Assembly (NCBI RefSeq): GCF_964194025.1
Contig: NC_134473.1
Span: forward strand, 63,054,001-63,118,000
Length of the DNA: 64,000 bases
Direction of reading: 5' to 3'
Source: Convolutriloba macropyga
Lineage: Eukaryota
Shown in pieces: positions 2,380 to 44,300 of the stretch. Within the stretch, counting starts at the first letter, position 1. Every line of letters starts with the position of its first letter. The translations under genes and the position numbers were made by a program. Under the pieces are notes generated by a model that saw only the letters and a program-made list of their open reading frames with translations, did no database searches and had not been told where the DNA came from.

Positions 2380-4620
2380 TTGTGTGACCCCCAAAAAATG
2401 TGTGATCATAATTTATTCACTCCAATAAGCAACAGAATGGGGTAGAATAGTGATTTTTGAGCTGCGGTGAGCGGAGGGAGTGGTGGTATCAGGCGGTGGG
2501 GTCGAGCATGGTTAGGGATGAAATTAGGGGAAGGGCCTGTACAACTTCAGGGGTTTCTGTTTGTTGAGGATTTCCTCTAAGGGCCTCCTCCCTGATCGTC
2601 CACGGATCAGATTGGTGTTAGTTGGTCTTTGCAGATGGGGCAGTCGCAAATGATCCGCCGAGTGAACGGTGTGGACTCGGTGTACGTGGCCAGATAAACA
2701 CGAGTGAAGCATTCCAGAAGAGCCTTCAGCCGCAATGGATCACTGATGTCATTTCTGAAGGTAGGTCCTTGACTAGTCGCAAAGTCCTGAAAATATAGCT
2801 AGAGCGATCAAAATGGGTTTTGAAGTAAGGTATCGGGAAAGTTGGTAATTGTATTCTCGAATCCTTTGTGTGCATCTTCTTTTCTTGCGCAGGCTTCGCC
2901 CATTTCAGAACCAAGAAAACTTGGGATTCTTAATAGCAATATTAGATCCAGTACTTGTGTAAACATTGGAAGAGGAAGGAGGCCCATGTGAAGGAGTCAT
3001 ATTCTAATCTGTAGAATAGCTGTTCCATGTCCACTTGATAATTGTTTTTGAAAATTTTCCAGTAACCTTGAACTGCTTTTGCTTAACCCACCAACATGCC
3101 GCACCAAAATAATTGCCGGGAGGATAACAGACTTGTACAAGCAAAGTTTCGTTCGCATTGTAGTTTTTGACGAAATATTCCTCTTAATCATTGCCAAAAC
3201 TGACATCGCTTTCTTGATTTTCGTTTGGATGTAGAAATTCTAATTTAATTTTTGGACAAAGTACATTTCAAGGTCAAAACCGTTTTGTAGATTGGACACA
3301 GTTTCAATCGACAATCTCAATTCTTCAATGGCATTGTCATCTCGGGACTTGTAGACCATAAGCGCGCACTTCGAGACATAGTTCTAAATTGCTTTCGGAG
3401 TACCGTTTAGATAGCTTGCTCAATTCCCTTTGAGCAACCTCGTTAAAACAGATGGATTTTGTTGATAAGGAGGGTCAGATCAGCAAAAATATAGGGCTTG
3501 TCAGTTTCCGATACAGTCGGGCTATTGTTGATAAAAGCAAGCTTTGCAAGAAGTATGTCATGTGGGACTTTGACAGATGCCTTAGCAGAAACTGTATAAA
3601 GTGCAATACTGATGTGAGTGGGGTTATTCTATACAGCAAGACTAATTGTGGATGAAAGATATAAAATTTCTTTCAATAAAGAGCGATGAAAAACCATGCT
3701 GAAAAGGCGAGATAATTTATACGAGCTATTTTCTCATAGGGGTGCAAACCAATTTTTCCAAAACTTTCTCCGATGTTCAACAGTCTAATTGGCTGACAAT
3801 TAGTCAAATCTGCTACCTCTTTCAAACTAAGGAGAAATCGTCCCAATTTTCCAACCGGATGGAAGCTGACTGCATTTGCCGAAAATCAAAAAATTTGCAG
3901 AGCGAAGCTCTCAGGGTGATATTGAGCTTCTGGCAGAGGACAGTTGGTAAACCATCTGGTCCGCTGCTGTAAACGACATCCAGTTGTGACAGTTCTTTTA
4001 AACATAAATTTTGGAAATCAAAATCGACAACCTCACTGTTCTCACTAGAAATTATGTTGACAGGAGTGTGTCTTGAAGACAGATTGAAAGTATTCCTTTA
4101 TTATTCTCACTTTACCATTAGCTGAGTTTTCTGATTTGTTTTCCAATTTCAGCACTTCATAGAGGGAGCAAGTTGAACGATAGCTTTTGAAGTGTTTGAA
4201 AATAGCATAATTTTCTCGTGATAGAAATAGTTTCTTTTGATATACCAATCTATCTTCTTTTGAGGACAACTTCTTCTTCTTCTTAGTTCCACAGAGCATA
4301 CATTCTTTCACGAGATGGCTTCGGTAGATGGTCGCTGACCTCGAAAATTTGTTGAATTCATTGTATGGTGTAGAATGAACACTGAGATGCTGCTCGAATA
4401 GTACATCAGGTGTGCTGACCGCGAGTATTAAGTCTGTGTTGCGCGTCATTTCTGGAAGCAAGAATATGGAGAACACTTTGTTCCTCCTTGGCATCTGAAT
4501 GCATTGTTCCAATTTGTATTAGGAAAAATTATATCTCAGCAGAAAATCCTGGGTATAGATTTGCCGAATTTGTCTATGTACTGTAACCCTTTATCGAACA
4601 AGGCGGCTCGGTAATGCGCG
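2380..4620 (-). mobile_element. Decayed CR1/L2-group LINE ORF2 (RT and C-terminal region)
   Basis: Minus-strand fragments read GPDGLPT (about 3945-3965, the pre-RT SxGPDG motif) and IKRNISSKTTMRTKLCLYKSVILP...LLENFQK (2997-3206, typical post-RT LINE region). Many stops and frameshifts. Confidence 0.7.
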
Positions 4621-17029: not shown

Positions 17030-17950
17030 TCGACATTTGGTGGATCAGAAGACCAAATCAAGTTCACCAGTATGATGCACTAAACGACACTCTAACAAAA
17101 CTCATTTCGAACTTAAAAACCTCCAGCATGAAGTATCTGTTTGAGTAATTGAAATTGAGTACATTTCGGTTTTCGAGAGTATGTGTACTGCCGGAGGATA
17201 AGCACACTTAAAGTTTTCAAAAACCTCTTCATTAATAAGCAATGGACTGCATTTTTTGCTTAGCAGTATAGCCAACTCAATCAGAACGCGGGTCGTGAAA
17301 TTTAAACGCCCGACAATGTTTGGCGACGCGGTAGAAGCAAAACCGTTACATAAGAACTCATTTCTCAGCAGTTCGACTGAGCTTGTCCATTATGGTGCTG
17401 ATTTCCAGCATTGATGTACCCTCCAGGCAACGCCATATGTTGAGTTGGAACAACGAATGTGAAACAAACAGATTTCGAAGCTTACAAAAACGTGAGAATG
17501 GTAACTCAAGAGTATACTTCTTACAGAGGTATTTAATTGACTATTTAACATCCGCTTTTCTGATGTTTTTCATTGCAAATCACGGCGTCATCTCTTATTG
17601 GGCAGTAAATTTTCTCCACCGTAGAGTTTTTAATGAAGAACTGAACAAAGCTTATAAGAAGCGTTGTCGGCCAGCGGAAAAATCCTTTTAGATCAGATCC
17701 GTTTAGGATATACATTTAGCCTCCGCAACCTCAGCAAGAAAATCGCTCATTGATCAGATATTGATCAAAAAGAATGAATCAAAGCATGCAAAGCTGTCAC
17801 ACCGTCTAAATTGACCTTTAAGAGAAAACAACGTCGCAGTCGAAGCTCTGGATAGAAAAGGTGGGCCAGTATTTGACAAAGTATACACACCTCAAGGGCT
17901 AATGCACCCAAAAGCACACAAAATTAACGAAACCCATTAACTAGTAAACA
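17030..17950 (+). mobile_element. Heavily decayed LTR retrotransposon gag-protease relic
   Basis: gacaTTTGGTGG resembles an LTR end plus PBS (about 17032-17043). IRTRVVKFKRPTMFGDAVEA is Gag-like. LIDYLTS ... WAVNFL resembles degenerate protease motifs. Confidence 0.35.
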
Positions 17951-18260
17951 TTAACAAGTTAGTTAATAGGTAGCTTTGTAAGTAGCATACAAGAAAAAGA
18001 TTCCTCGCTGAAAAATTTAGTGAATTAGAGGCATCCGCCGAATCTTACGCTAAAGTTTCAAAACAAACATTAACTGATACAAGAGAAACATCAGCAATGA
18101 GCATAACTGACAAAGTACTGTAGATGGAATGAAATAGAGCTGTGCTTTTGGAGAAAGGTAATGAATTTTGTGTCTTAAGGAGATCGACATATTATTGAAA
18201 ACAGTCAAGACATGAACTGCCCCCAGTTTTTGCGGCAACAAATATTCCCCAAAAAAGATG

Positions 18261-18423
18261 GGATCTATTCTGTTTCGCCCCCCCCAGTGTCTTTTATGAC
18301 CCCCAGTTACAATTTATATGTTATATAGCAAATTAGTATGTAATAAAAAAGCACGTGCGTATGGGGGTCATAAATGATTTATGCCCACTAAGCTGGGGGG
18401 GCGGGGCGAAACAGAATAGATCC
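18261..18423. mobile_element. MITE, GG..CC termini, 8-bp TSD (Merlin-like)
   Basis: TIR ggatctattctgtttcgcccc / ggggcgaaacagaatagatcc; TSD aaaagatg on both sides; second family member at 60011-60174. Confidence 0.85.
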
Positions 18424-18799
18424 AAAAGATGTTAATGAAACTTTGTTTCTTATAAAATAAACAAGAACTCCTTTTTCATACTTTTTTATCATAAACTACA
18501 AACAACGGTATCGCCAGCGCAACCTTACAATATTGCGATTGCTCACAAAAAGAGACAACAAAGCGCCTCGCGTTATCTATTCCAGGAAGTTCTTAACGTA
18601 ATTAAAGCAATACTTAAACTTCATCTTCTGAAAAATAGCCATGAACTAGCTTCAAAATTTTATTGAGACAAAAAATATCAATTCTAGTGCTTGAGGCCAA
18701 TGAGCAACTTTTATAATAAAAAACTAAAAGTTTAAAAATCAAACTTTCTTTCTCGGCCGCCATTGATTTTTTTCGCAATGTCTTTACTCCAGTGACAGT

Positions 18800-19400
18800 G
18801 CTCCCGATATGGAAAGATCAAAAGTCAAGCTCCTACACAAACTAGCAGACAACAATCTGCAATTCATATACAACGGAAGCAGGTATTGTCAAACGACGAT
18901 TTGGAAATTAAGACTTCGCTAGCAGTTTTATTGCTGTATTTGGATAAAACGTTTGAAGAGAATCAAAGAGCCGAAAAAAGAACAGCTCTGGAGAGCTTTT
19001 TTCAAACAAAATATGACAGTGCTCATAAACTACCTCTTGAATATAAAATACTTCCCTCAGAAATTCAAATAGCAGAAATTTCCTTAAAAAGACTTTTCGA
19101 TATTGTCCAACAAACAAACATACAAGACCAAAGAAAATTCAGAAGAATCGAAGACGTTGAAATTAAAGTTAATAATCGTACATATGATTTTTTTTCTCAC
19201 AAAAAATGTAAATCTAAATGGAGTCAAAATTCAATTATAATAAACTTTGTTCGGAAATTGAATAAACTTCCAAAAGCTCTAAGAAAGCAAAATCAAAGGA
19301 AAAATTTAAAAGAATTAAAGCAAGAGATGCAAAAAAGACGCGAAAGAGTTCCAATGGACAAAAAATTGAAGGCCTTAAAAGTTTAAAAAAATACTTTTAT
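18800..19400 (+). mobile_element. Decayed LINE 3' fragment
   Basis: Lys-rich ORF 18886-19386 with post-RT-like pattern (ALESFF..KY...YKILP...NKLP), followed by an A-rich tail. Confidence 0.35.
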
Positions 19401-20769: not shown

Positions 20770-22800
20770 TGTGAAATAAACGTTTTTGAACTCTCTAAAT
20801 TATTTTATTTTTCATTAAAAGTTTTTTATACTTTTAAATCGTTTCCCAATTTATTTTAGTATAAAATGAATATGTATTTGCATTTGTCTGAGACCACAAA
20901 TTAAACATTTCTAGGAAAAAAAATTAAAAAATTTCGAATCGAGTTTTTTCTATTCACAATATATTATGCTTAATTACATTTTCATGTATACATCTTCTAT
21001 CACTTAATTTAAAAACTAAATTTCCAATCCAGATTTTTTGAATTTGGTAATGTTTTTGTATTTCTGTTGTCATTCAGAATTTTGTCTTAAGTAAGCATTT
21101 TTGTGTGGGGTTCTGCAAAGTATGTATTGTGATTCATATATTTTTTCCCTATAATTCAATAAAAATAAATGATTTGAACTAATAATTTAGCACAAGTACT
21201 TGCCCCTAAAGTTTGTCTAGTGTGTTTAGTGCCGACTTCAGTTTGCTGATGAATTTGTTTTTGATAATTATGAGCTATTATACTTTGCGGCAATCATCCT
21301 TGACTTTCATTCAACCCTAATCGTTGAGCCAGGCTCAGCAAGAATCTGAACGAGTATGAATCGTTCTTTTGAAGTTTAGATATCCCAATGTTAAGTAGGA
21401 TGCTTGCTTCTCTGCCCAATTTTATGGGATCCGCATTTGTTTTATTTTGTTTCCTACATCACGTGTGATTTCTGGACTTCATCAAAAGATGTTTTTTGGT
21501 TCGGAGGCAAGATCGTTGCAGCTGATTTCAACTCTCATAAATTTTGCAATTTGCTCTAAAAATTTGGTTGCTTCTGTATTGTAAAAAAATAGTTGGTTTT
21601 TCATGAGATCTATCCCGGCGCTTTTGATGCTCTTTAGTTTTGTTTTCACTTGATTTTTGTCAGATAAAGTCTCATTTAAAATCTGGTTCAATTCACTATA
21701 TTTGAAGACCATTCATTTGGTTTTTGGTCCAACATTTCATGTTCTGTTCAAGGTCGGTCAGCTTGTTACACTGTTAAAGCTCTGTAAACAGTCCGTTGAG
21801 CTACGTTTCTTCAAGGCTGATGTGATGTTCAGGTGCCAGAATGGTAATATTCCTGTGTCAATTGGTTGTTGAAACCATTTACAGATCAATTTAGTATTGT
21901 TGCTCAAATTTGTGTTGATATCATAAAGGCCAAATTTCTTTTGTCATTAATTTTTTACAATAAATTGCAAGTTTTTATGTACTGTGTTGGCAAATCTTGA
22001 GTTTTTGTTCGAGTAACCACTAACTGTGGAGATAATATTATTCACATACAGCTTCATCCTCCACTTTTCCAAAGTTCGTATCAACATCCTGCATATTGGC
22101 ATATTCCTTTTGTGTTAAATTTTAGTACTTCCCATGTAGCCAGTTCTTTAGCAACTTAGATTCCACACCTTTTCCTTGTTGCAGTCTTTACAATTACCAT
22201 TTTGATCAGAATTGGAAACTTTTGCCTGCGCTCTGGTTTTTGCATTGATGCCTCAAAATATTTCATCCTAGTTTTTTGGTAGTATTACAACCATTGTTGC
22301 AGCCAAGGCTATACCTGCTTTTGCAAGCACTAGACGCACTTCCGTTTAAATTGAGCATTTGTAAACATTAAACTTAAAAACTTTTTTTGTGGAGCTATAG
22401 ATCTCTGGAGCCAGAATGCTTGAGTTGAGTTCTTTTAGAGCAACTGTAACTTCAACCATAAACACCATTCCATTACATACCAAATAAGTTTGCATAGGCA
22501 GTCATTTAGTTTGAACTTAGTCGTTTAGACGGCATCTTAATAAACTCATAATTTTAAATTATTGAAAAGATTGTGTACTACTTCTGCGTAATTTTTTAGT
22601 TGTTTTTTATCACAAAACGCATCCGAAAAAATTTTCAGTCCTATGTGAACCAAGTTAGACATAGCAAAAATCTGTTTACTTGCTCAGCTTTTTTGAAATT
22701 TATGGTAGACCATATTTTTTAGGAATCACTGCTAATGAAGGTTGATTGTTAAAAGGATGCAAAAAAGCTTTTAAGACTTTTTTTAATCTTTTTCCAGTTT
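20770..22800 (-). mobile_element. Old decayed copy of the PHD-containing Penelope-like element
   Basis: Minus strand reads MKYFEASMQKPE / SDQNGNCKDCNK / GKGVESK..KNWLH..EYANMQDV / MKLYVNNII / WFQQPIDTGIL, colinear with 35582-36895. Its 3' non-coding part (about 20770-21100) matches about 36950-37280. Confidence 0.85.
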
Positions 22801-27936: not shown

Positions 27937-30900
27937 GTCTCCTCAGAAGTCTTCCGCATAGTCTTTCAGGTGTCCAGAAGCTTTTCGCTGACGGTTTGGC
28001 GTCAGGGCTGCGCACCATAGTCAGTTTAACAGGAAAACCCGCGATTTGTGACATGGAAAGGTGACTCCCCTGAGTCTCTTCTTCGGCAGACCGGCTTGGA
28101 CGGGTGATTGGACTATCAGAAGACGATTCGATGACCTCATTGTGAACAGAGGATGGAATGGGCGAAAGCTGTGTGTCGACAGATTCCGGAATCATAGAAT
28201 TTGCTTGAATAGCTGGTTTCTCTGAAATATGGTTCTCGGTTTCGTCATGCTCAAAGTCAATAAAAGGGTTCACATGAACTGACGTCGGCGCCAGATCTGA
28301 GCTGGACACAGTGCTTCGAGGGCCATCTGCGTATTCAATACGCACCACTTTTTGGCTGACAACCTCAATAATTTTCACTTTCGTCACTAATGGCTCAGAC
28401 TTATTTCGCACAAAGTTACGTAATAGAACATTGGCTCTTGCTCGTATCCACGCTGGCATGTGATAGCTAAATCCTTCACTCCGCTAGAACTGGAACAATC
28501 TATAATGAGGGTTTTCATTCGTCGCCGTTCACAATAAAGTACGAATAGCAGTTAATGCTTCGCATAAAACACTTTTCAAGTGACCGGCGGGTAATTTGCG
28601 AGATTCTAAAAGACAACAAACGGCCTTCCAAGTCGTTCCGTTCCTTCTTTCACACTGACCGTTCCCTATTGGGTGATAGGGCAAATTTTGTGACTGAGCA
28701 ATCCCGTTTTCTTGGCAAAATTGTTGAAACTCATTTGAACGAAAGTGTTTTTCTCGATCAGTGTGGATAAAAAACGGATAACCAAAAACGCTGAAAACAT
28801 GACGAAGGCATGAAATAACAGTTGTCGAATTGATCGATCGAAGCGGTAATGCAAAGGGGAATCTGCTGTATTCGTCAGTAACGGTAAGTAAGAAGCAGTT
28901 ACCAGTGCCCGGAGACGGCAGTTTAGGTCCCATTATATTGCGAGCAAGGCGCTCGAATGGTTTTAGAGCTGATATCAATTTTCCATTCGTGAACTTAACG
29001 AAACGCGGTTTGGTTACACAACAAACTTCGCAGGTCTTATCGACAGTCTTGCTGACTTCAAGTGAAAACGGCAAACTTGGTCGGTGTACATAATTCCACA
29101 TTCGAGTAATTGCAGGGTGCGCTAAATTACAGTGTAAATCGAGTAGCTTTGGTATTCTTAGAAAAGAGCCAATAGCCGCAATCCGTGACAGCGCATCGGC
29201 CCCCACGTTATCTACGCCCAACTTATTTGAGATATCATATCAAAACTTGGCAAGTCCAAGTCTCCATGGCATGAGTTTCTCATTTTTTGACTTTGGATTT
29301 ATTATCAGCAAATATGAAAGCAACGCTGCGCAAATCAGTCTTAACCAGAACCCGATAAGGCTTCAGTAAATTGTCAGACTTCCGAAAAGACTTTACTATG
29401 GCTAGGGCTTCTTTCTCCACAGACGAATAGACCTTTTCGGTATTGATAACCTCTGAGAGAAAAATGCTATTGGTCGCCCAGCATGTGTGATAGCGCATCC
29501 GACAGCCGACACCGATGCATCAGTCTCCATTATAAGAGGTCCTTTGTCGGGCACTGGCAATGACAGTGACAATTTTATTATCTCCTGTTTCAGCTCCTTG
29601 GTTCTGTTAACAACCAACTGCGGTAGTGGAAACGCACACTGCTAAGACGCAGTCGGTAAGGGCTGTTTTTTATCCGAATATCGGTGAATCCATTTTGAAT
29701 AATACGCGAAAAAGCCAATCAAACGCTTTGAAGCTTTTTGTTCTTCCGGCATAGGAAAATTTTCAAGAGTTTGAAATCGATCGGGGTTATGCCGTTTGCT
29801 TCCCGCCGAGATAATATGCTCCAGCATGGCACAAAAACGCAATGCCAAGGGGCACTTTTATTAATTCAGTGTTAATCGGTCGGCTTTTACCGCATTCAGA
29901 AATTTCTCCAGATTCTTTTCATAATCATCCTTCGAACGACCTCCAACAATGACGTCATCCAGAAATGGGTGAGCACCAGTAATTTTATGCTTCTCAATCG
30001 AGTCATCCATTCGGCGATGAAAGCAGGGTATTGCGTTGGTCAAGCCAAAGGGCAATCATGTAAACTGGTACAACTTGCCTTTTACTTCGAAGGCTGTAAA
30101 ATTTCTGTCACCTTCCTTCAGCGGATTCTGATGGTATGCTGCTTTGAGGTCGATTTTTGATAAATAATGGTAATTTGTGTCTTTGTCCAATAAAACCTCC
30201 AATTCGGGAAATAATAAGCATCCACATCCGCGAATCTATTGACTGCTTCTGAATAGTTTATCACCATGCGATCTTTATGCCCGTGACGCGCAAATGCTCG
30301 TGCGCTCTAGGGGGATGTGGAAGGCTCGATTATTTCCTCTTTTAACATTCGTGCAACTTCAGTCTTCATGAGCTCCTGATCCGCGTGTTTGCACCATCTG
30401 TACTTGGTAGTGATAGGCCTCGCTGAATAGACAGAATCATCGAAAATAATTGCTGGCTAAAAATTCTTTTTGGAAAATGAACATACGGGTTCTGACAAAG
30501 TTGCCGCTAGGAAACTAAAATCAACTGTATCCTCCTTACCCTCAAAAGTGAAGGCAAAATGTGCTATGTTGGGATAAAACGTTCAAATCAATGACAGATC
30601 ACAAATGAGAGATTTTACCACAGCGAGTTTAACGGCGTAAAACTTGATTTAGATTGTCAATAGTGCATCACAAAAACCAACATTTTTGAGTGTATCTACG
30701 TTTGCCTAGCCAGAACTTCTCTGCGACTTTCTAACATCCAGACATTGTGAATAACAAGAACTCTCAGTAATAAATGATATTGTTGATCCGGAATCGATGA
30801 GTGCCTTAACCTCAACGCATTCTTCACCAAGACCGATTTGTTCAGAAATTCTTGAAAGTCCTTGGCTTTTCGTGGCACACATCTGGATTGCTGACGAAAA

Positions 30901-31692
30901 TGCTTCATTGTCTGGAATTTCTTCTGGTAGGATTGCCGCCGTCTGTGATCTGCAGACCACAGCCCAGTGGCCGGTCTTGTTGCGTTTCAGACAGGATGTA
31001 TTTTTAGCAAGACATTTGAGCGGCGGATGTGCCTTTTTCCCACAGAACGAGCACTTAGTCTAGGAAAACTCCTTGTTCTTTCACGTTGTCCTTTGTCTCG
31101 TTTGTCATAAATTGCAGCCATACTACTTGTGTTATCCGAGGTGCTAGAACCCGAAGCTACAAAAGAACGAGAGAAGTCGGTAGACATTTATATCGCGATA
31201 GCCAAGCTTTTGCAATTGTCAAGTGACACTTCCGGATTGGTTAGCACCAGCAACTTCGCCCAGATAGTATTGCTTCATAGACCTGATACCAAGCCGTAAC
31301 ATAATATTATGTCCTTGTGCTCTTGGATCGTAAGGTTGCTACATTTGTCTTTTTCAATCAGTAATCGAAATCTCTTGAAGAAATCTGATACAGATTCATC
31401 ATCTCGTTGCTTACACGACAGTACCTGATGACTTGCATACATAATCCGACCAGGTTTCTGGAATTGTCTATTGAGTATTGCCAAACCGTGTGTAAATGAT
31501 GTCGCTCCATCTGGTATAGAGAATGATTAAGGCACCGGGTAAGACCGTAGCAACGTCAATTGATGCGCGTCTTCTGTAACCTCGTTGATGACCAGTCCGT
31601 CAGTGAAGCATTTTTTCCACCATGACCATTGTTCAGATGTCGGATTGGGGGGCAGTTCCGGAGGCCGGAATTTCATAGTTGTCTGAGCAAAT

Positions 31693-31822
31693 TAAAGTAT
31701 ACTCTCAGGAAAACACGTTAGCGTCAAAGCTTCACTCAGAAAACAATCTGAAAACATACAAAGTATGAATTAAACTGAAGGCACAAACTGAAGGATTTAT
31801 AAATAACTGAAATCACACAACA
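31693..31822 (-). repeat. 5' LTR (130 bp)
   Basis: Direct repeat of 27807-27936; gag ATG lies 16 nt downstream. Confidence 0.9.
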
Positions 31823-32116
31823 TGAACCATTTTAAACCTTTTATTGAATCTCTTGGCATCGGTCGTCCTACCATGCGAGCTAAAAGCTCTATTGAAATCT
31901 AAATTAATCTTTTTTGCATGATTACTTATTGTTTCAAATTTGTTCCTTTTATATCGATAAGTAGCACGCTCAATTCATTAAATGTCTAATATTTTGCGCA
32001 CGGGCTGCTAATCTACAGTGATTTAAAAATTGCCTTAATGTCCTGATAAAAGAGACTGAAACTTTGTTCACTTTACTCGAGACAAAACTTGTGGCCTCCG
32101 CTTTTCTTTATTGGTG

Positions 32117-32451
32117 CTAGTACAATAGACTGAAAGACAACAGATCGAAAGCCAAGATTGGGACAATAGGTGGAAATAAAAAAGTTGCGTTTTGGCCAAT
32201 CAGATTTGTGCGCTCATTTTTTATACAGCAAGTTCTGTTGTGATATTTTGGTCAGATGTGATAGATTCATATTCAGTCCCTCGGGCAGCTAAGGCATGAC
32301 CATGGTTCTCAAGGCTGGTCCATGGTGTGGTAGTTATATTGCAGCTCGCAGATAATGCTCAATTTCAACCAAAAAGAATAGAGATTGATTTTCGATCTAT
32401 TGTCCCAACTTTTCTGTTTTCGATCTGTCGTCCTTACGGTCTCTTGTCCAG
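32117..32451. mobile_element. MITE-like element with ~50-bp imperfect TIRs
   Basis: gacaacagatcgaaa..ttgggacaatag / ctattgtcccaa..tttcgatctgtcgtc. Confidence 0.65.
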
Positions 32452-33190
32452 CCATTTTCTTTTTAATGTGTCCTTAAATTGATGGCTCCAATATAGTTAA
32501 TTGTTTATTATTGAACATAGCGTTTTTAACTGCGAAGTACAACGCAAATTGTCCAGAAGGTCTTGCTCTTTGCGTAAAGTTCATTCTGGAAAGTTCTATA
32601 GTTCTAGAGAATCCCTTGGAATTAACTCAGATTCTAAAGTACCCTCCGAATTCTTGTGAAAAATTCGAAATGGTAGAACTAGTTGAATTCAGAAATTAAA
32701 GGCAATTTTCAGCTCAAAGAAGGACTAATACAAGTCAATTTTTATAAAAGTGAAATGTAGGGAAGGCAGTTTCAGAAATTGCGTTAAACGTTATTTTGAA
32801 CCGTGATGGTACGAATTTAACCGGTTGAGCCCCCGATTTTATCTTTTTTTTGCGTTTGGCAAGATATTTCGGTCTCAGAGTCCTTGCTCGGTTTGTTTTT
32901 CCCAAACGCAGTTTTGGTCCCAACGATAGCGTTGAACATCATATTTATTCTCTGACATAATCTCGATTCTAACGTTTGAACCATAAATTTTTATGACAAT
33001 TGGTTAAAAAAACTGTCTCGTAAATAATGCGCCATAAACCAGCGTATTTAGTTGTCACTTTCAAATATTTATTTGTTTGCAGCCATTTAAAAGGTATTTT
33101 TCGAAAGCTTCCGCATTAAAAAATTCGTGAGCACGTTTGTAGGGTCACTACACTGCCTTCCCCTATGGAAGCATAATGCTCCACTCATTA

Positions 33191-34051
33191 TTAATTTAAA
33201 AACTGGACAGTGAACTTCCATCCATGAGTTTTGTATATATTACGTGCACCGTCGTCCATAAGCACGCATCTTATTTGATTTAATAACTGGAATCTCTATG
33301 TTCGGTCTCCTTTATCAGGGTGTAACTTTAGAGACAGAAGCTTGAATCGCCGATAGATTTCCTCAATCGTTGCATTGGGCAAAATCCAAAGTAGACTGTA
33401 TATTTACAATTCTCCTGTACCGGGTAACTTTTTTCAATCTCTTGTAGTCGTCGTGTAGTGAGCTCTTTGGCATTTATCTCCGACTCTAATTTTAACTCTA
33501 TTTTTCTTACACTTGAGGCCGTTTTTAAGCTTTTTTCCGAGCTACTTCCAGCTCCGCCTCCTATTCAGCGAATTTTTTACGAGCTGATTTTAGCTCCCCA
33601 GAAAAAACGTCTGGTTCAGTTCTTGCTGACTCGCAGTCGAGCCGCATTTGCTGGAGCTGGCATTCCAACTCAACTAAACTGTTTTTAGCTTCAATTCTAG
33701 CACGAAAATGCTCCCTTTGCTGTTCGGCAACGATTAATTGTTGCTTTAACTCATTAACTGGCCTTTGTAGCATACTGTTTTCTTGTTGTACACTTTTAAG
33801 TTGCTCCTGTAAATGCAAGTAAGCAACTCCCATTTTTCGCTGTTTTCCAACCGGACTTTCATACGACTCCAATCCTTCGTAGTAAAAGGCGGTCTCTGGG
33901 CTAATGTTGTTGCCTATAATTCATCCAGAGCCATGACCGTTCTAAAACGGCTTATGTCCCCGCAGATTCTATAGACTCCCCGTCGGACAACTGCCTTTAC
34001 TTCGTACAGTTGCGGAAGATAATATACATAATCTTCCACTTCTGGTTCCAT
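33191..34051 (-). pseudogene. Decayed intronless coiled-coil plus C-terminal J-domain gene
   Basis: MEPEVEDY... start, coiled coil 33561-33872, then IYSLLWILPNATIEEIYRRFKLLSLKLHPDKGDRT*RFQLLNQIRCVLMDDGARNIYKTHG with intact HPD. Internal stops and frameshifts. Confidence 0.7.
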
Positions 34052-35503
34052 TTCGTTCGTTTTCTAAACAAAACCAATCTTAGACATGTTTAAAAGAATG
34101 AAGATCATTCCAGACATTCAATTGACGTTGAAAAGTTTTCCAGCGGAAAAAGAATTGTTTTTTTGGTTTACATCCCCCGGCTCAAAGACCGTTTTCTCGG
34201 TGCCCAAAAACTCGCTTACTTTTGTTTCAACAACCTTTTTTGAGAACTGTTTTTGCTCTAACTGTTGGTTTTTCAGAACGGTTATATAATTAAGTTCGAT
34301 TAACGTGTTAATCGGCTGTAGTGCCACTCTTGGTTGAACACCTTCCAACAATAACGTAGTTGATAAAATGATTCTTAAACACCTTACTAGAATTTTTGCC
34401 GTCAAAAATATTTTCGCATGTCATTAGCGTTAAGGTCAATTCGCTTACTAAATGCCAAGCTTTCAAAATGTTTTTTCTGTGGGTTTAATCCAAGGAACTT
34501 CATGCCAATTCAATTCACTGATGTTTGTGTTGAAGTCTAATAGTTGTTCATGTGTATACTTTCCATTTGGCCCCAGGAAAACTTCTCTTCCTGTTCATAG
34601 AAAGTGCACCAAAATTGATTTTGTTTCCAGTATTACATCTTGTTTTGTAATTTTAATTTGCCCATAAACCCCATTCGATAATATTTTATTGCTCTCAATC
34701 GACGTTTGTAGCAATTATATTAGACATATAGTTCTTTCAAAGGATTTTTCGCTGAACACAATCTTTGTCCGACCAAATTCAATTTCCGTCTTCAAAAAAC
34801 GGTACAGCCCGGAGGCCATTAAGGGCTCTTAGAGAACCAGAGAACGGTTTCATCTGTCACCAAAAACTCGAGGAGGAATATTTGAACAAGGATGCAGAGA
34901 AGTAACTGTCAATTAAAAGTTAAATTGATTAACTAAAACGAATGTTTTCGAACATTGCGTTAATCGTCAGGTTTAGAAATTAATGGACATCATTTATAAA
35001 ATATAAAAACTTTTCTTTGACTATAATTCTAAGAAATGAGTTGAAATAACATCGAATTTTTGAAATTATTTAGAGTTAAAATCACATTTACAACATGGAG
35101 TTAATTTGAACTTGGAGTTAATTTTCTGAGCCTATAGGACACTATGTAAAAATAAGACTTTCACTTGAATCAAGCCGCTATAAATAATCCACTGTTTCGC
35201 TATCACAGATCGAAAAGTTTTGTTTCTTCGAACTCCTGTATATTTTAAGAAATTTATTCTTTCACTAATCTGCAAAATTGTTAATCGTAACTTCAATATC
35301 AAATGACTTTCAACAATTTCGTCCTCCGTGCCCAGAACTCGGGCTTAAAGCGACCTCATCTCAAGGCACTAAGTCCATCGCGTGACTAAGATTTTGTTCT
35401 AACATATACTTAGAGCCTTACAAGCAGGAATTTGAAGAATTAATTGCAATTCATTGGCGAGAAAGAGGAGCACTCAATTAATTTAATTTGCAAAACATAA
35501 AGC

Positions 35504-35551
35504 ATAATTGGTAAAACATAATTGGTAAAACATAACTGGTAAAACATAAGC
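35504..35551. repeat. Three copies of a 14-bp tandem repeat at the Penelope 5' truncation junction
   Basis: cataattggtaaaa twice, then cataactggtaaaa. Confidence 0.8.
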
Positions 35552-35581
35552 AACCTAGCTCCAGATATCCCAAGTTCCGCC

Positions 35582-36895
35582 ATGAAGAGTTTACTAAAGC
35601 TTGCGGTGACGAATGTTCATTTCAAATGTGATGGGATCTGGTATGTGCAATCTGATGGTCTGGCTATGGGTGCATCACTGGCTGTAATACTAGCAAACGT
35701 GTGGATGAAATCGTTTGAGGCATTTCTGCAAAAACCGGAGCTCAGTGAAAACTTTTCCACATCCGACCAAAACGGGAAGTGCAAAGACTGTAACCGGAGA
35801 GTGACTTACCGAGGAAACGGAGTAGAATGTGAGTCATGCAAAAACTGGTTTCATGCAAGATGCCACAAAATATCGAATGAGGAATACGCCAACATGCAGG
35901 ATGTTGTTTGGATTTGTACTTATTGCAGCAATCAACAGACAGTGGGGCATGATAAGGAGATGAAATTGTTTAAAATGTATGTGGATGATATTATCTGCAC
36001 GGTTCGTGGTGACCCGGATGAGTATTCAAAATTTGCAAACTCATTACACAACAACCTGCAATTTACCTTAGAAAAGGTGAATATGGATGGGGATTTGGCT
36101 TTTCTTGACATTAACGTAAATGAGAGCAGCAAAAATAATATCAACTGTCATTGGCATCAAAAACCAACTGACACTGGAATAATACTGAATTTTTGCAGCT
36201 GTGCAATGCTTCAGCATAAGAAAAAGATGATTCAAGGGGCGGTTCACATGGTTTTTAATGCAACCTCTAATTGGTTGGCCTTCGATCAGGCTCTTGAACA
36301 GAACAAAACTTGCTAGACCAAAAATCAATATCCAGAAGAATGGTCTTCAAAAATAGTGAATCAGACTCTAGAAAAGATAATAAGTGGCGGTAAAGACCAA
36401 TTAAGAACAACACCAAAAGAGCATCAAAAAAGCAAGACTAAATCTATTGATAAGCCAACTATTTTTCTACAATACAGAGGCAACCTTTCTCAAAACTTTG
36501 CGAGCAAACTGAAGAAACTATGCGAATTGCAAGTAGTTTTTACAACGCGGAAATTAAGATCGTGCCTCCCCACACTGAAATCATCATTCAATAGAGACCT
36601 GAAATCCCACGTGGTATATGAGATTAAATGTAATGGATGCGGATCCATCTATGTTGGGCAAACAAGCCGGCATGTTACCACAAGGATAACAGAACATCAA
36701 AAGAAGGATTCACAAGTGGGTCAACATCTGGTTGCATGTCGTGGAGCCACGAATGACATTGAATGGAAAATTCTGGACGCCTGTCGCACAGTAGAAAAGT
36801 TAATGATTATCGAAGCTATATATATCAGCAAGCTGAAGCCGGCACTAAACACACGCGATGAATATAGGGGGAGAGAACTCACGCTAAAATATTAG
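35582..36895 (+). pseudogene. Penelope RT-PHD-GIY-YIG ORF remnant, one in-frame stop (TAG 36314-36316, probably from TGG)
   Basis: ORFs 35582-36316 and 36356-36895 are in the same frame and separated by a single stop. Confidence 0.9.
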
Positions 36896-37239
36896 TTCAA
36901 ATCAAATTTTGACTAGATGGGAATAAATAGGGCAAAAAACATTTTGTGCATGACAAAACGAAATTTGCAAAACCTCCACAAGAGGGATACTCATGGTTAG
37001 GGAAAATTCGCAATAACCCTAAAAATACAAGAACATGGCCAAAATCAAAAAATCCGGAATAGGAATAATTTTAAATAAAATGATAACAGATGTAAATTTG
37101 AGTTGTAAATAGGCTGAATATTGTAATAGGGAAAAATTTTCGATTGATTTTGTAGAGTAGTTCCTAGAATTGTTTTAATTGTTGTCTCAGACAAATGTAA
37201 ATACATATTCATTTTATATTTTAACAGTTTGTAAAACAG

Positions 37240-37286
37240 TTTTAACCTGACGATGAACGTGAAGTTCAAAAACGTTTTTTTTAAAT
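37240..37286 (+). ncRNA. Candidate degenerate minimal type-I hammerhead ribozyme in the Penelope 3' region
   Basis: CTGACGA-tgaac-gtgaa-gttca-AAAA-cg-TT: intact CUGANGA box and 5-bp stem II, but AAAA instead of GAAA and a weak stem I. Confidence 0.4.
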
Positions 37287-37942
37287 ATTGGAAGTGATTT
37301 TAATTTGACAAAATGGTTTCCTTTATATAAAAATCAATAATTGCAATTATTGATCAATTAAATTTGAAGTTCTATCACTTAATTTTTTGCAGAATTGAAT
37401 ACAATTTTGCCTGTATGTACCCAAAAATGTACGCAAATGGTGATATTATCTGAATTATTAAATTTCTGCTCAAACACGAGAAATTGTTTAACACTCAAAT
37501 CTGTCAAATTACATAGATCACTGACAGAAGTTCGTGATCTGGGAACTTTTTCTCTAATTGCGGGTTTCAACCTGACAAAATATTGCCTCAGTTTCCGCCA
37601 TTTATTGGGCAATTATTGGTTGTTCCAATCAATCTTTGCAATTAAAATAGAGCAACCAATCAATTATTGCCCTCGAATGAACTTCAAATTGCCAAAGACT
37701 AGGACAGAAAAATGCGTAAAAAATTAGTCTTCCGCACATCTCGACTGGCCAACAAAGTAAATCACTTGATTGATATCAGCTCATGGACTGGACTCAAGAA
37801 ACGAATCATGCAGCCTCTGCATGATCCGTTTTTTGAGTGGAGAACAAATTCAACGAAAACAACATCTGCACCTGGCAGCTCGCATGCGACTGCACAAACT
37901 GGACAGAGGACAATTTTCTAAACTGCATTTATGGGATAAATT

Positions 37943-37961
37943 AGAGAGAGAGAGAAAGACT

Positions 37962-38004
<43 letters not shown>
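37943..38004. repeat. (GA)n microsatellite, probably the (TC)n 3' tail of the adjacent LINE
   Basis: Pure AG run 37963-38004, starting 40 nt past the LINE stop codon on the minus strand. Confidence 0.9.
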
Positions 38005-38008
<4 letters not shown>

Positions 38009-38557
38009 GGCTTCTGTGGGTCTTTCCACATGGGTTTGCACCCTTCATATAACGACTGAGCTGAGCTTCTGCACCGGGTTACAATGTCCACAGCTGCAGT
38101 TGAAAGCCCAGGAACATAAGTTGACTTCCGAATAACTTTTGAAGAAGAAGTTCCAGTATACTTTTGTTAAATATATCTTATCAATTTGATCGAGATCGAC
38201 GTTCCCTACTTTTCGTATTATATTTAGTAAATAACTGGTTCTTTTCCAGAAGTTTTCATCAGCCTTCCTTGTTCTTGTTTTATTAATTGTTATTAGCTCG
38301 TTTTGACGTGTGCTTAACAACCCTTCATTATTGTTTGTTTTAATGGGTATTTTTATATTGTAAGATCCTTTAAGCAGTGATATGAGCATTAATAGATCAT
38401 GCAATTCAAAGTAATATGACAATGGCAGCAACTTCAGTGTGGTCAGTCTTTGCTTGTAACTAATTTCCCAGTTACTGATTATCCACGACGTTGCTTTTCT
38501 TTGAATGCGCTCGATGTCTTTGCTTTCGGTCTTATTCGCGAACCTATTAAGGGCCAT
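38005..38557 (-). mobile_element. 5'-truncated CR1/L2-group LINE 3' end
   Basis: IERIQRKATSWI...YKQRLTTLKLLPLSYYFELHDL...CSWAFNCSCGHC; frame intact. Confidence 0.85.
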
Positions 38558-38598
38558 AAATAAAAATCAATGAAATTCATTTCTACTATTTAATATTT

Positions 38599-39180
38599 AC
38601 AGAGCTCGTACAAGTGGGGCAATTGCAACAAACAAACCATGAGCATCAAAAACAGGGATTGAAAAATGGAATAATGGATTCAAAATGTTCAACAATCTTG
38701 TTTATCTTGAAGTAGTCATCATCGATTATCCCATGACGATAGAAAAAGTTAATCATGTTAATGGACCGTTCGTAGAAAGATCCAGGGGCTACTTTAAGTT
38801 TGAACTTGTTTCTCCGTCTTACAGAGCTCGTACAAGTGGGGCAATTGCAACAAACAAACCATGAGCATCAAAAACAGGAATTGAAAAATGGAATAATGGA
38901 TTCAAAATGTTCAACAATCTTGTTTATCTTGAAGTAGTCATCATCGATTATCCCATGACGATAGAAAAAGTTAATCATGTTAATGGACCGTTCGTAGAAA
39001 GATCCAGGGGCTACTTTAAGTTTGAACTTGTTTCTCCGTCTTCTCGTCACACCAAGAGATAAAACTTCAACATTATCATAAAAGTCGCTCAATAGCTTCC
39101 TTTGAGCCAAGAGAAGGAACCTCCATAATAGCCCTTCAGTTTTGCTATTAATTTTTACAAATCCCTGCTTACCATTCCTT
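38599..39180 (-). mobile_element. LINE 3' fragment whose terminal 222 bp are tandemly duplicated (38599-38820 / 38821-39042)
   Basis: ..SFYERSINMIN..CSWFVCCNCPTC terminal motif. The two units differ at one base that I could see. Confidence 0.75.
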
Positions 39181-40011
39181 AAGAATGCAATTCATGGAGG
39201 AGACAATTTCATGGCGTTGAGGCGCTCTAAATTTTAAAAGTTTGACCCCCTCAGTCTCCTCATCCCCCACTCCCCTCCACCCCCAATGCCAGCCGGTCAT
39301 TTAAGAGCAATTCGATCGACGTTAGTCGGTTATATTTTATACTTATTAACGCCACCATTGAACAGCTGGTCCATGAGGACAACCTAAGGACCAGAAAAAC
39401 TAAAGTCCCATCCGAGCAATTTTTAATTGATCACCACCTCCTTGTAGTTGTTTGAGAGCAATTTGTCCTACATCAGTCGGTTGTTCAATAATTTCTATTT
39501 TTTTGTTTATATGCTCTACATTTATTGTAACATTTATTCCCGAAATATTTATTAATTTATTCGGACCATAATAAACTTCGGTCTCGTTCGAAGCTGTTTC
39601 TCTGCCTGCGAGAATGAAGGTCGCTGTAAAGAAGCAAACCTAATGAAAACTCATCCTCCGCCATTGTTGAGGGACGGCTCCGAAAAAATTTTCCTACTTA
39701 CGCTTAATCTTAGAAATAAGACACCCATGCTCAGTTAGAGCATTTTTCAATAGAGGCATAATTCGCAACATGAACTAAAAACAAGCGTATCTACTCTGAT
39801 GCCGTCTATTTATATACTGCTTTCATCAGTTCTGTTCGATCAATTTTTTATGGATAAGTACAATTTACTGTTTTCTCATATCTCAGCACAGAGATTTGTG
39901 GGCTCTGCTTCACTCTGACGATGCCATGTATATGTTTTGCTGATTTCTTTCTCTATTTAAAGGAAGTGGGAGTTTGCAATCTGATCTTTGTGAATTGAAA
40001 TTTTCAGTCAA

Positions 40012-40944
40012 ATGGCCAAAGCAATTGGCGCTGCAGCCAAGCGCCTTACACAAGAGATTGCAGATTTACGCAAACAGAAAACTGCCGGTTTCATTGTTGA
40101 CGTAGACGAAAGCAATATTTTCAAATGGAATGTCCGAATTTTTGGCCCACCAGATACGTTGTACGAAGGTGGGTACTTCAAAGGTGTCATGGAATTTCCA
40201 GCTGACTACCCATTCTCGCCTCCCAAATTCAAGTTTATTACTAAAATGTGGCATCCAAACATTTATCATGACTCGGGTGAAGTCTGTATATCTATTTTGC
40301 ACTCTCCCGTTCCAGACCAGCAGAGTGGAGAGAAAGCTGAAGAAAGATGGCGACCAACACAAGAGGCTAGGACCATAATTTTAAGTGTCATTTCTCTGTT
40401 TTCATGTCCCAACACTTTTTCTCCGGCAAATGTGGATGCATCTGTGATGTATCGGAAATGGTGTAACAAAGAAGACGACAGGTATGTAAAGATCATTCGC
40501 AAGCAGGTTGAAAGCACAAAAAGGGACGCTGAATTAGATGGCATTAAAATTCCTTCCTCCGTTGAAGAGTATTTAAAGGAGGAGCGTAGCACAATGGTTA
40601 AAGAAGAGGAAATGGATTTCGACTTTGACGTAAACGACGACTATGACGACGACGATGACAACTACAGCGTCTACTCTGGTTCCGGTGCTTACAGTGACCA
40701 GTCTGATAACGTTAGCAGTGGACTGGCTGCAGCTGGGGAGGGGGACAACAGCATTGATGATGTGATGGCACCAGACTCAGGAAACGAGGAGGAGGGATCC
40801 ATCACTGGTACCCCCACAACAAAAACGGAAGCCACTTTCCCCTCGTCTCTTACACAACAGTCGTCTAACAGCAGTGCTTTCGCCACAACGTCAACCTCAG
40901 GCCAACCAGTGCCCGGTAGCTCCAGAAGTACCACGTACTTCTGA
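40012..40944 (+). CDS. CDC34: Ubiquitin-conjugating enzyme E2 R (CDC34), 310 aa, intronless CDS
   Basis: IFGPPDTLYEGGYFK, DYPFSPPKFKF.TKMWHPNIY, catalytic VCISILH, Cdc34-type loop SGE..EERW, PNTFSPANVDASVMYRKW, acidic tail. Confidence 0.97.
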   Translation: MAKAIGAAAKRLTQEIADLRKQKTAGFIVDVDESNIFKWNVRIFGPPDTLYEGGYFKGVMEFPADYPFSPPKFKFITKMWHPNIYHDSGEVCISILHSPVPDQQSGEKAEERWRPTQEARTIILSVISLFSCPNTFSPANVDASVMYRKWCNKEDDRYVKIIRKQVESTKRDAELDGIKIPSSVEEYLKEERSTMVKEEEMDFDFDVNDDYDDDDDNYSVYSGSGAYSDQSDNVSSGLAAAGEGDNSIDDVMAPDSGNEEEGSITGTPTTKTEATFPSSLTQQSSNSSAFATTSTSGQPVPGSSRSTTYF

Positions 40945-41391
40945 CCATAAATCGAACTTGATATGACGCATATTCTATAGAACTCGTCACATGAGTGCAT
41001 CGCATCAGTTGTTATGTAACAAGACCCTGCATTCAATTTCGCGATCTTTCCCGTTAGTCCCCCCATTTAGTGGATGGTCATTATTCAACCCCCTCCCAGC
41101 GTGCAAGTGCAATAGTTATACAATTGTTTACCGTGTATAAGCACGGGATTTATAAAGTATCGGAGGGCAAAAACGGAAAAGATCAATTTATTTTAGGCAT
41201 TTCATTACTTGAAACAGGCTGTATTTTTAACATTATGAACCCCGATTTTAGTTAGTACTCATTATGATTAGCACCCATTACTCAGGGGGTCAGTAATGGT
41301 AAATAGATAACAGTCGCTCTTCGATAAAGAAGAACAAATGTCGATCGTTTATCGGATGAGATCATTGTAGTTATTGGTTTAATTAGTTGTT

Positions 41392-44300
41392 CCTCTTCAC
41401 AGTACTTTTATCGCTTCGTACTAAGTTGCTATTAGATAACATCAAAGTAATCGAGATATCTATAAATTACCACTGATTGGTGACGAAAGCAGCAGGTCCT
41501 CTATTTATATCTGTCTACTATTGATCCTTATCAGTTAGATTTAAATTTAGCCTAATTTTGTTTAATCGGTTTTATATCCTGAGGTCTAATATTGTGTGCA
41601 ATAAATAATTCATTGACTGAAACCCAAAGATCATCCATGAAATCAAAAGAAATGGTTACGTGGTAATTAGAGCGTGGAAGAAGGATAATTTAAGCTGCGG
41701 GACTTTTGCTATATTTACAACCAGCAGTCTAATAAATCAGAATTTTTTTGTTGGTTTTAATTGCTCTCAAACGAAGTTTGAACCAATTATTTTATTTATG
41801 CAGATTTTTATGCGATTTGACCTACTACCGACCTTTCTACGATTTTTTTCGTCCTCAAAAACAGGATATATAGTAAGTTCTTTGAGGGCATTAGGTCGCT
41901 GAGCAGCTCTGCTAGTCACTGAGTGTACAATTTACCAAAGCGTCAGGAAAGAATGTATAAAGAGCGTTTCTTTGGAGATTTTGACCCCGCCTTGATTACC
42001 CCCGCCACATACTCCCGCTGCTGCCCGATGTCTGTCCTAGTTTTTCGTTCTATTTGACTTTTCGCCCTCAAAAACAGTATAAATAGTTAAGTCTCCGAGG
42101 GCATTAAGTTGCTGAGCAGCTATGCTAGTCATAAAGTCTACAATTCACCTAAGCTTCAGGAATGAAAAAATCATTTTATAAAGGGCGTTTTTTGGAGGTT
42201 TGGACACCACTTTGTTTACTCCACCCCAGACTCCCGCTGCTGACCTCATATCTGTCTCCTAGTTGTTTTAGGGCTTTCGAAGATAAGTAATTTTGTTAAT
42301 GGCATCAATCAAAAGCTTCGAAGTTTTTCTTAGAACTCTATTGAAAGTTAATATTTGAAAAGAAAGCCCATTTTAAAATTTTGTTCAAAATAAAACTGGA
42401 ATTTATTGTTCGTGGTTGTTACAGAACAACCAGCGGATAAATTTCGAAAATAAGTGTTTTGCGTAAAGCCAATTCCCAGTTTTCCAAAAAATTTTCTTTT
42501 CCAGAAATTGGAAAACCCGTTCCTGGAAAATCCAAAAATATTAAATGGTTCTCAGTACTCTTCACAGTACTTTTATCACTTCGTACTAAGTTGCTGTTAG
42601 ATAACATTAAAGTAATCGAGATATCTATAAATTATCACTGATTGCTGACGAAAGCAGCAGGTCCACTTTTTAGATCATTCTAATATTGATCCTTTTCAGT
42701 TAGTTTTAATTTAGCCTAATTTTAATTAATCGTCTTTATAATCTCGATGTCTAATATTGTTTGCCATAAATAATTCGTTGACAGAAACCCAAAGATCATC
42801 CTGGAAATCAAGAGAATTGGTTGCCCGATGATTAGAGCGTGGAAGAATGATAATTTGAACTGCGGTTTTTTTGCCATATTTACAACCAGATTTCTAATAA
42901 ATCAGAGTTTTTTGTTGTTAATTGCTTTCAAACGAATTTTGAAGCAATTATTTAAGTTATGCAGATGTTTTTGCGATTTGGCCTACTAGCGAATTTTTTC
43001 CTTCTATTTGACTTTTCGTCCTCGAATACAGGATAAATAGGTAAATCTCAGAGGGCATTAAGTCGCTTAGCTAGTCAGTAAGTGTACATATCACCTAAGC
43101 TTCCGGAAAGAGGTTATTATTGTATAAAGAGCGATTTTTTAGGGTTTTGGAGGCCACCTCAATTACCCTCGCGCCGGACTCCCGCATCACACAAAAGTTT
43201 CCTGAAGTTTTTTTAGAACTCTGTTCAAAGTTAATATGTTGAATAGAAAGCCAAATTTAAAATTATGTGCAAAACAAGACTGGAATCTTTTGTTCGTTGT
43301 TTTAGAAGAACAACCAGCGGATAACGCATAAAAAGTTGCGACATTCTCAAAATTAAGAAAACTAATATTTTACGTGAAGCCAATTCCCAGTTTTTCAAAA
43401 AATTTTCTTTTCGAGAAGTTGGGGAAACCCGTTCCTGGAAATCCAAAAATATTAAATGGTTCTGCTTAAGCTTTGTCTTCACAGTACTTTTATCACTTCG
43501 TACTAATATTAGATAACATTCGTACTAATAAATTGCTATTAGATAACATCCGAGTAATCGAGATATCTATGAATTACATCTGATAGTTGACGAAAGCAGC
43601 AGGTCCTCTATTTAAATCTGTCTACTATTGATCCTTTTCAGTTGGATTTAAGTTTAGCCTAATTTTGTTTAATCGTTTTTATATCCTGAGGTCTAATATT
43701 GTGTGCAATAAATAATTCATCGACAGAAACCCAAAGATCATACATGAAATCAAAAGAAATGGTTACGTGGTAATTAGAGCGTGGATTTAACTTGCGGTAC
43801 ATATGTCATAGTACCCGAAATCTAATAAATCAGAATTTTTTGTCCTTTTTAATTGCTCTCAAACGAAGTTTGAATTAATTATATAAGTTTTGCAGATTTT
43901 TATGCGATTTGGCCCACTACCGATTTTTTGCTTCTATTTGACTTTTTGTCCTCGAAAACAGGATAAATAGGCAAATCTCAGAGGGCATTAAGTCGCTGAG
44001 CAGCTATGCTAGTCATTAAATGCACATTACAGCTAAGCTTCAGGAAAGAAAAAATCATTGTATAAAGAGCGTTTTTTGGAGGTTTGGACCCCGCCTTAAT
44101 TATCCCCGCCCCAGCCTGCTGCTGCCCTCATGTCTATCTCCTAGTTTTTTCTAGGGTTTCCAGAGATAATTAATTTTGTTGACTGCATCACACAAAAGTT
44201 TCCTGAAGTCTTTCTTAGAACTCTGTTCAAAGTTAATATGCTGAATAGAACGCCAATTTTAAACTTAAGTGCAAAACGAAACTTGAATCTTTTGTTCGTT

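Follow-up and report, generated by a model that had tools for sequence, protein, structure and literature searches.

The 64-kb window analysed here (64,000 nucleotides of the Convolutriloba macropyga genome) contains a copy of a Penelope-like element (PLE) in which a PHD zinc finger lies in frame within the reverse transcriptase (RT), in the loop between motifs B and C. It is nearly certain that the finger is a genuine domain under selection in a PLE clade that is active. The best explanation as a whole, to which we give about an even chance, is that the PHD was acquired once and kept under selection in a recently active PLE, where it would serve as a nucleosome tether.

The copy lies on the plus strand at 35548-37328 and comprises codons 421-868 and the 3' UTR of the element. 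It is 93.7% identical in nucleotide sequence (blastn) to positions 1467-3250 of an intact copy elsewhere in the genome, L004 (G000:C9:36029376-36033107), and tblastn covers amino acids 421-868 at 93%. The first ~420 of the 868 codons are absent, and with them the N-terminal domain and RT motifs 1 to A. The remaining ORF (35582-36316, +) encodes motif B, the PHD finger, YVDD and the thumb. It is closed by an in-frame TAG (36314-36316, +), at which intact copies have a Trp codon. Past the TAG, the frame runs on through the core of a GIY-YIG endonuclease (36608-36841, +; Pfam PF01541, 29.5 bits) to a stop that ends at 36895. The endonuclease core has an internal CCHH, with C-x2-C between GIY and YIG and then H...H, in the window copy as well as in L004. 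The 3' UTR or tail follows at 36896-37328 (+; blastn to L004), and is repeated upstream as a pseudo-LTR in full arrangements. Since it is 5'-truncated, carries the stop codon and has an R to M change directly before YVDD, the window copy is dead.

Motif B reads GLAMGASLAVILANVWM in the translation (35657-35707, +), and the motif B or RT4(B) helix reads QSDGLAMGASLAVILANVW (35648-35704, +). Its columns Q, G, A, G and W are invariant in an alignment of 55 sequences. When aligned with PHD-less PLEs, the element shows an insert at 35732-35953 (+) that consists of a variable linker, the PHD finger and a second variable linker; about 20 aa separate motif B from the finger, and a short linker separates the finger from YVDD. 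The catalytic YVDD of motif C, or RT5(C), is at 35978-35989 (+). The original prediction had placed MYVDD in this range, which is correct for YVDD, the M being encoded at 35975-35977. Motif C columns R, Y, D and D are invariant or nearly so in the 55-sequence alignment, and the RT thumb lies downstream of YVDD in the same ORF.

The core of the finger, from the first to the seventh cysteine, spans 35780-35926 (+) and was recognised by Pfam PF00628, by matches to solved structures, by AlphaFold2 and by Foldseek. Its pattern is C-x2-C-x12-C-x2-C-x4-H-x2-C-x17-C-x2-C, including the WFH and W-x-C signatures; both the coordinates and the residues of this complete C4HC3 finger had been predicted correctly. 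The window segment scores as a PHD with 35.0 bits (E 1.4e-8, profile positions 1-47 of 47), against a gathering cut-off of 24 bits for PF00628. The intact copy scores 26.8 bits, and PHD-bearing relatives score 18-33 bits. In a phmmer comparison with solved structures, PHD fingers were matched exclusively: INTS12 came first (E 1.9e-6), and further matches were PHF2, EBS/SHL, MLL1 PHD3, Pygo, BPTF and TAF3. As judged by sequence, the PHD match is far beyond chance. Automated Pfam annotations of database proteins already assign PF00628 and PHD_Pygo to such ORFs.

The seven Cys, the His and both Trp of the finger are invariant or at least 90% conserved across 19 diverse sequences, across which the linkers flanking the finger are not alignable. 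Among the PHD cores of these 19 elements, deep-branching members close the finger with W-x-C-G-C (that is, C-x-C), and one with C-x2-H. The C-x2-C ending belongs to the crown group, which includes the families of the C. macropyga genome. These deep-branching members score below the Pfam PHD cut-off.

That the element is a PLE, as originally predicted, is borne out by the combination of an RT with a C-terminal GIY-YIG nuclease. The intact copy has a single ORF of 868 aa, in which an N-terminal domain is followed by RT, thumb and the C-terminal GIY-YIG nuclease (Pfam RVT_1, 32.2 bits; GIY-YIG, 25.5 bits). PLE homologues with HTH_animal and RVT_1 number in the hundreds in the protein collection that was searched. 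The Penelope/Poseidon clade of EN+ Penelope-like elements reportedly goes back to work by Arkhipova in 2006. With this clade the present element shares a pseudo-LTR, 5' truncation, TSDs of variable length, and the lack of a CX2-5CxxC finger in the linker. Unlike that clade, it has an insert of 62-92 aa with a PHD finger between RT4(B) and RT5(C), its motif B is GASLAVILAN instead of GSPPAPxLAN, and no hammerhead ribozyme was found in it by Rfam at E<=1. The Rfam searches returned no hammerhead match at E<=0.1 in window positions 30000-42000 and none at E<=1 in four full copies, and are of a kind that a divergent or dimeric ribozyme could escape. Inspection of the intact ORF revealed DKG, a CCHH inside GIY-YIG, and no CX2-5CxxC linker finger. 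In the scheme of Craig et al. (2021, PMC8557442), the Penelope/Poseidon type, as opposed to Neptune/Nematis/Hydra, has the CCHH and no CX2-5CxxC finger between RT and EN; by these criteria, the sequence is that of a C-terminal EN+ PLE of the Penelope/Poseidon type.

The RT-PHD-thumb region was modelled with AlphaFold2 from the 55-sequence alignment (mean pLDDT 85.8, pTM 0.78; pLDDT 84-94 over the finger). In this model the finger follows the motif-B helix and precedes the beta-hairpin on which YVDD sits. A Foldseek search of the PDB with the RT-PHD model found TERT (3du5, 6usr) and group II intron RT (6ar3, 7k9y), and also retron RTs and viral RdRps, including coronavirus nsp12 polymerases. 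According to the model, the insertion leaves the right-hand RT fold intact, and the PHD forms a module of its own, predicted with confidence. Whether the palm would still fold had been raised as a question along with the original prediction; in the model it does, as a right-hand polymerase. Going by known RT structures, the B-C loop and the finger in it would be exposed on the surface. Modelled alone (AlphaFold2 pLDDT 80.8), the finger matches the Pygo PHD in Foldseek with an rmsd of 1.0-1.2 A over 54-56 residues of the predicted model. It also matches MLL3 PHD6, MLL1 PHD3, BPTF, AL1, EBS, TAF3, PHF2 and DIDO. Most of the PDB entries that match the finger are complexes with H3K4me2/3 peptides.

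The genome (1.18 Gb) was searched with a piece of 244 aa, which gave 5973 first-look candidates. The PHD core is spanned by 147 of the 150 genomic matches listed, and the other three begin within the core, being truncated. The deficit of ~70 aa expected of a PHD-less copy was seen in none of these 150. Contigs of four public runs of a single study, which have the character of genomic DNA, show no joint of high abundance by which the finger would be lost; the few joints near it account for less than 0.5% of the local depth, none is a multiple of three, and GT..AG ends are absent. A count of copies with and without the PHD, which the original prediction had called for, thus finds the finger in the great majority of listed matches and no common PHD-less form in DNA. 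When a short-linker PLE RT (P0099) was used as query, all listed genome matches consisted of two pieces that break at residue ~158-160, in the B-C loop, and a second family with open frames of 885 codons likewise splits the P0099 match at this loop. Because the matches break there, it follows that, among the matches listed, all PLEs of the genome carry an insert in the B-C loop.

At least 13 matches have open frames of 869 codons. Young-family copies share 98.7-99.6% identity with L004; they are truncated at differing 5' positions and flanked by TSDs of 8-15 bp. In one locus (L052) the element is flanked by a direct repeat of 452 bp, which is a pseudo-LTR of the kind typical of PLEs. In the DNA-run contigs, depth climbs along the element and is about 20 times as high at its 3' end as at its 5' end. 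By the sequence of its copies, the family is young and abundant, and has transposed very recently by target-primed reverse transcription (TPRT).

A pseudo-LTR was also considered as the source of the high depth at L004 positions 1-149. This reading was rejected, as the depth belongs to a separate high-copy repeat that hosts this copy (13-14-bp TSD, empty-site joints). The repeat, found at L004 1-147 and 3256-3370, is the insertion target of the PLE in L004, and joints of the empty site are present. Its summed depth in the DNA-run contigs is ~270,000, which is 20-30 times that of the PLE's own 5' part. Older PHD-bearing copies form head-to-tail arrays at G000:C15:44819388-44827893 and G000:C4:34834866-34841935. 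The periods of these arrays are about 2.6 kb (four copies) and 3.18 kb (three copies), and such arrays are typical of tandem PLE insertion.

Substitution rates were estimated by the Nei-Gojobori method for the intact copy against diverged copies of the same genome that have no stop codons. The dN/dS of the PHD core is 0.25-0.54 where dS is 0.16-0.32, and that of the RT core is 0.35-0.62. Against the second, most diverged family, dN is 0.19-0.25 for the PHD core and the same for the RT core, and 0.77-0.98 for the linkers of the insert; dS is saturated in this comparison, where dN/dS is only indicative, and no reliable dN/dS was obtained for the linkers. On these estimates, the PHD core is as constrained as the RT core and under purifying selection. 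The dN/dS of the insert had been proposed as a check on the prediction, and it falls on the side of a selected domain.

Relatives were drawn from a collection of 5.8 billion proteins. In ~90 PLE relatives, motifs B and C stand exactly 28 aa apart (one has 30 aa), whereas the relatives that bear the finger have 90-120 aa at this place; the statement that this linker is normally short in Penelope-like RTs therefore holds for these canonical relatives. PHD-bearing relatives, about 40-58% identical over the RT-EN region, were obtained from marine metagenomes (two Tara Oceans runs) and from another two long-contig assemblies in ENA; relatives that keep the finger stem from at least three other sample sources. 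A HMMER scan of 1.84 billion cluster representatives gave 1216 matches at E<=1e-10. Among the best 150 of these, many of them fragments, at least 13 have a recognisable finger, which is complete in 10 and present as the N-terminal half only in 3. Feature and fold searches of the protein atlas returned PHD-less PLE clusters only.

A maximum-likelihood tree was computed from 59 RT-EN sequences with the insert columns removed and the position of the root not fixed. All 22 PHD-bearing rows lie on one side of a branch with an SH-aLRT of 100, and terminal branches measure 0.6-0.9 substitutions per site. This sequence tree points to one gain of the PHD (or, as it is unrooted, one loss on the other side), followed by long retention. 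By copy counts, tree and dN, the in-frame PHD of the B-C linker can be taken as a true domain that is family-wide and selected rather than accidental.

The same loop carries other inserts elsewhere in the tree. Within the short-linker group, a small clade from metagenome contigs (P0026, P0056, P0113, P0118) has unrelated inserts of 38-150+ aa in the B-C loop. The insert of P0026 contains a C2H2-like stretch of the TGEKPY type, with a weak match to Pfam zf-H2C2_2 (18.6 bits). Because unrelated inserts occur there in a second clade, the B-C loop appears to be a permissive and recurrent insertion slot.

Further PLE remnants are present in the window. An older, decayed and 5'-truncated copy of a related PLE lies on the minus strand at 20834-22450 (blastn, 66% identity; tblastn, amino acids 411-868 with frameshifts). 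Frameshifts and stops interrupt its translation, in which the PHD insert survives as a shortened remnant (CKDC...). It is truncated at codon 411, almost matching codon 421 of the main copy. A distant PLE fragment on the plus strand at 17473-18895 comprises the N-terminal domain and the start of the RT (tblastn, amino acids 27-455, 29-53% identity, three frames). It stops short of motif B and is hence uninformative on the insert. An inverted bit of PLE 3' tail, 67 nt long, is found at 34907-34973 on the minus strand (blastn to L004 3166-3232, 77.6%), ~575 bp upstream of the truncated copy, and may be the remains of a complex inverted insertion. The 64-kb window has 37.5% GC and a CpG observed/expected ratio of ~0.9, which suggests little methylation-driven depletion of CpG in this region.

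The lineage seems to have acquired the finger once, in the loop between RT motifs B and C, and has retained it under purifying selection while diversifying deeply. As to function, we propose that the PHD, exposed on the palm, might act as an accessory docking module. The likeliest role would be to tether the RT-EN/RNA particle to nucleosomes by way of a histone tail, possibly one with methylated H3K4, and such tethering could influence the site or the efficiency of nicking and priming. Docking to chromatin is suggested because of the structural neighbours of the finger and its invariant Trp. In 19 sequences, the Trp before the His ligand is invariant, and the second cage aromatic is not fixed but shifts position between subclades. 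The invariant Trp occupies what we take to be the position of the methyl-lysine cage Trp in fingers of the BPTF, PHF2 and ING types. That the ligand is a histone tail which guides integration is a tentative proposal, and we rate its chances as somewhat below even. The original prediction went further and had chromatin reading coupled directly to TPRT; this was conjecture and is unsupported as stated, the flanks of 27 young insertions having no GC or CpG enrichment in a crude test and the finger often being basic.

Across members, PHD-core net charge takes values from -8 to +10 and is often basic, and most members share a basic C2-C3 stretch with the conserved pattern [RK]-x-V-T-x-R-G. The H3K4me2/3-reader subclass of PHD fingers is characterised by an aromatic cage, formed by the Trp ahead of the His ligand with one to three more aromatics, and by an acidic groove that takes up the H3 tail. 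Readers of H3K4me3 are usually acidic in the C2-C3 stretch, and a net basic PHD finger is unusual among them. The often basic charge therefore weakens the reading as an H3-tail binder, and would fit the binding of nucleic acid or an acidic surface at least as well as that of the basic H3 tail. The finger might contact template RNA, target DNA or the acidic patch of the nucleosome beside the palm, and aid the handling of template and primer during TPRT. In favour of this are the many strongly basic members (net +5 to +10) with the C2-C3 pattern, the location of the finger inside the polymerase domain between motifs B and C, and the sister-type lineage with other inserts at the same loop, one of them with the weak C2H2-like match. 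However, the charge is not conserved, some members being net -4 to -8, and the closest structures are PHDs that bind histone peptides, whose Trp, presumably of the methyl-lysine cage, is invariant here. We think binding of this kind improbable.

In a crude test of low power, with a single 64-kb window as background, neither GC nor the CpG observed/expected ratio of the 3' flanks of 27 young insertions was seen to depart from that of window tiles (p 0.20 and 0.40), with no enrichment of either; within this scope, promoter-like targeting was rejected. Several insertions lie within other repeats or (TAA)n tracts. The missing bias in the crude flank test agrees with a finger that recruits a host protein, or that is a mere structural or regulatory zinc module of the RT, and leaves the choice of target unaffected. 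PHF2-VRK1 peptide and Pygo-BCL9, among the structure matches, are indeed cases of PHDs with non-histone partners. Yet a purely structural role would leave the ~90 related RTs that do without an insert unexplained, and there is no known candidate partner; we consider this alternative unlikely. An artefact, be it an intron, a cysteine-rich stretch that arose by chance or a host exon that one decayed copy captured, would suit the dead window copy with its stop codon and 5' truncation, but is close to impossible given that the finger is intact and in frame in at least 13 full-length open frames, occurs in several diverged families and other sample sources, is under purifying selection and exceeds the Pfam cut-off, and that the rare DNA joints (<0.5% of depth, not multiples of three, no GT..AG ends) and the P0099 breaks leave an intron or a one-off chimera essentially refuted at the level of DNA.

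The nucleosome tether can be extended to a broader proposal, which is doubtful. An ancient animal clade of PLEs would use the palm-embedded PHD to read a histone mark or nucleosome surface and so steer GIY-YIG nicking and TPRT, and the B-C loop would be a modular slot. If true, a TPRT element guided by a reader within its own polymerase would be a first, and PLEs would swap targeting domains at the B-C loop: a PHD here, and C2H2-like or low-complexity inserts in the second lineage. How target sites are selected by PLEs is poorly understood, and no RT is more closely related to telomerase than theirs. Here a high-copy, active family has a conserved domain of the reader type built into its polymerase, which offers a testable handle on whether chromatin state guides TPRT. 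The finding also bears on the gain of accessory domains in retroelement evolution and on which surface loops of RTs tolerate functional modules, which is relevant to RT engineering. If the finger proves to be merely structural, this is a modest annotation point.

Contrary to the original prediction, which knew of no PHD in Penelope elements, Craig et al. (2021, PMC8557442) describe PHD insertions in five Chlamys PLE families of Chlamydomonas, placed either in the EN or in the RT, where RT2a and RT3(A) flank them. CR1 elements and Rehavkus transposons are cited there as further carriers of PHD fingers. Full-text searches of ~8.4 million papers and preprints, a corpus to which Repbase, Dfam and subscription papers do not belong, turned up no PHD in the B-C loop of a PLE RT, and Chlamys as the one precedent for a PHD in a PLE. 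A PHD in a PLE protein is thus already precedented, and the present case is set apart by the host, the element clade, the B-C site and the old, diversified clade. PLEs seem to have gained a PHD at least twice, at different sites.

The PHD of Chlamys elements, like the present one, is in frame inside the catalytic PLE protein, and in some families within the RT itself. The hosts of Chlamys are green algae and its EN is N-terminal and without CCHH, whereas the host here is taken to be an animal and the EN is C-terminal with CCHH. In Chlamys the site of the PHD is the RT2a-RT3(A) interval or, in the EN, the interval from the H to the E residue; here it is between RT4(B) and RT5(C). The five families in which the Chlamys PHD was reported were not presented as a deep clade, while the present finger belongs to an old and diversified clade that dominates the listed PLE matches of the genome. 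Like the PHD fingers of CR1 ORF1 and the chromodomains of chromoviral integrases, the finger is a retroelement-encoded domain of the reader type, and such domains are thought to link the element to chromatin. The CR1 PHD, the function of which is also unproven, is part of ORF1, and the chromodomain is at the C-terminus of the integrase, whereas the finger described here is inside the polymerase. In this it resembles the IFD (insertion in fingers domain) of TERT. Both are lineage-specific insertions into the RT core of PLE/TERT superfamily proteins, and both are tolerated by the polymerase fold. The IFD is found between motifs A and B' and is no zinc finger; the insertion described here is a PHD between motifs B and C.
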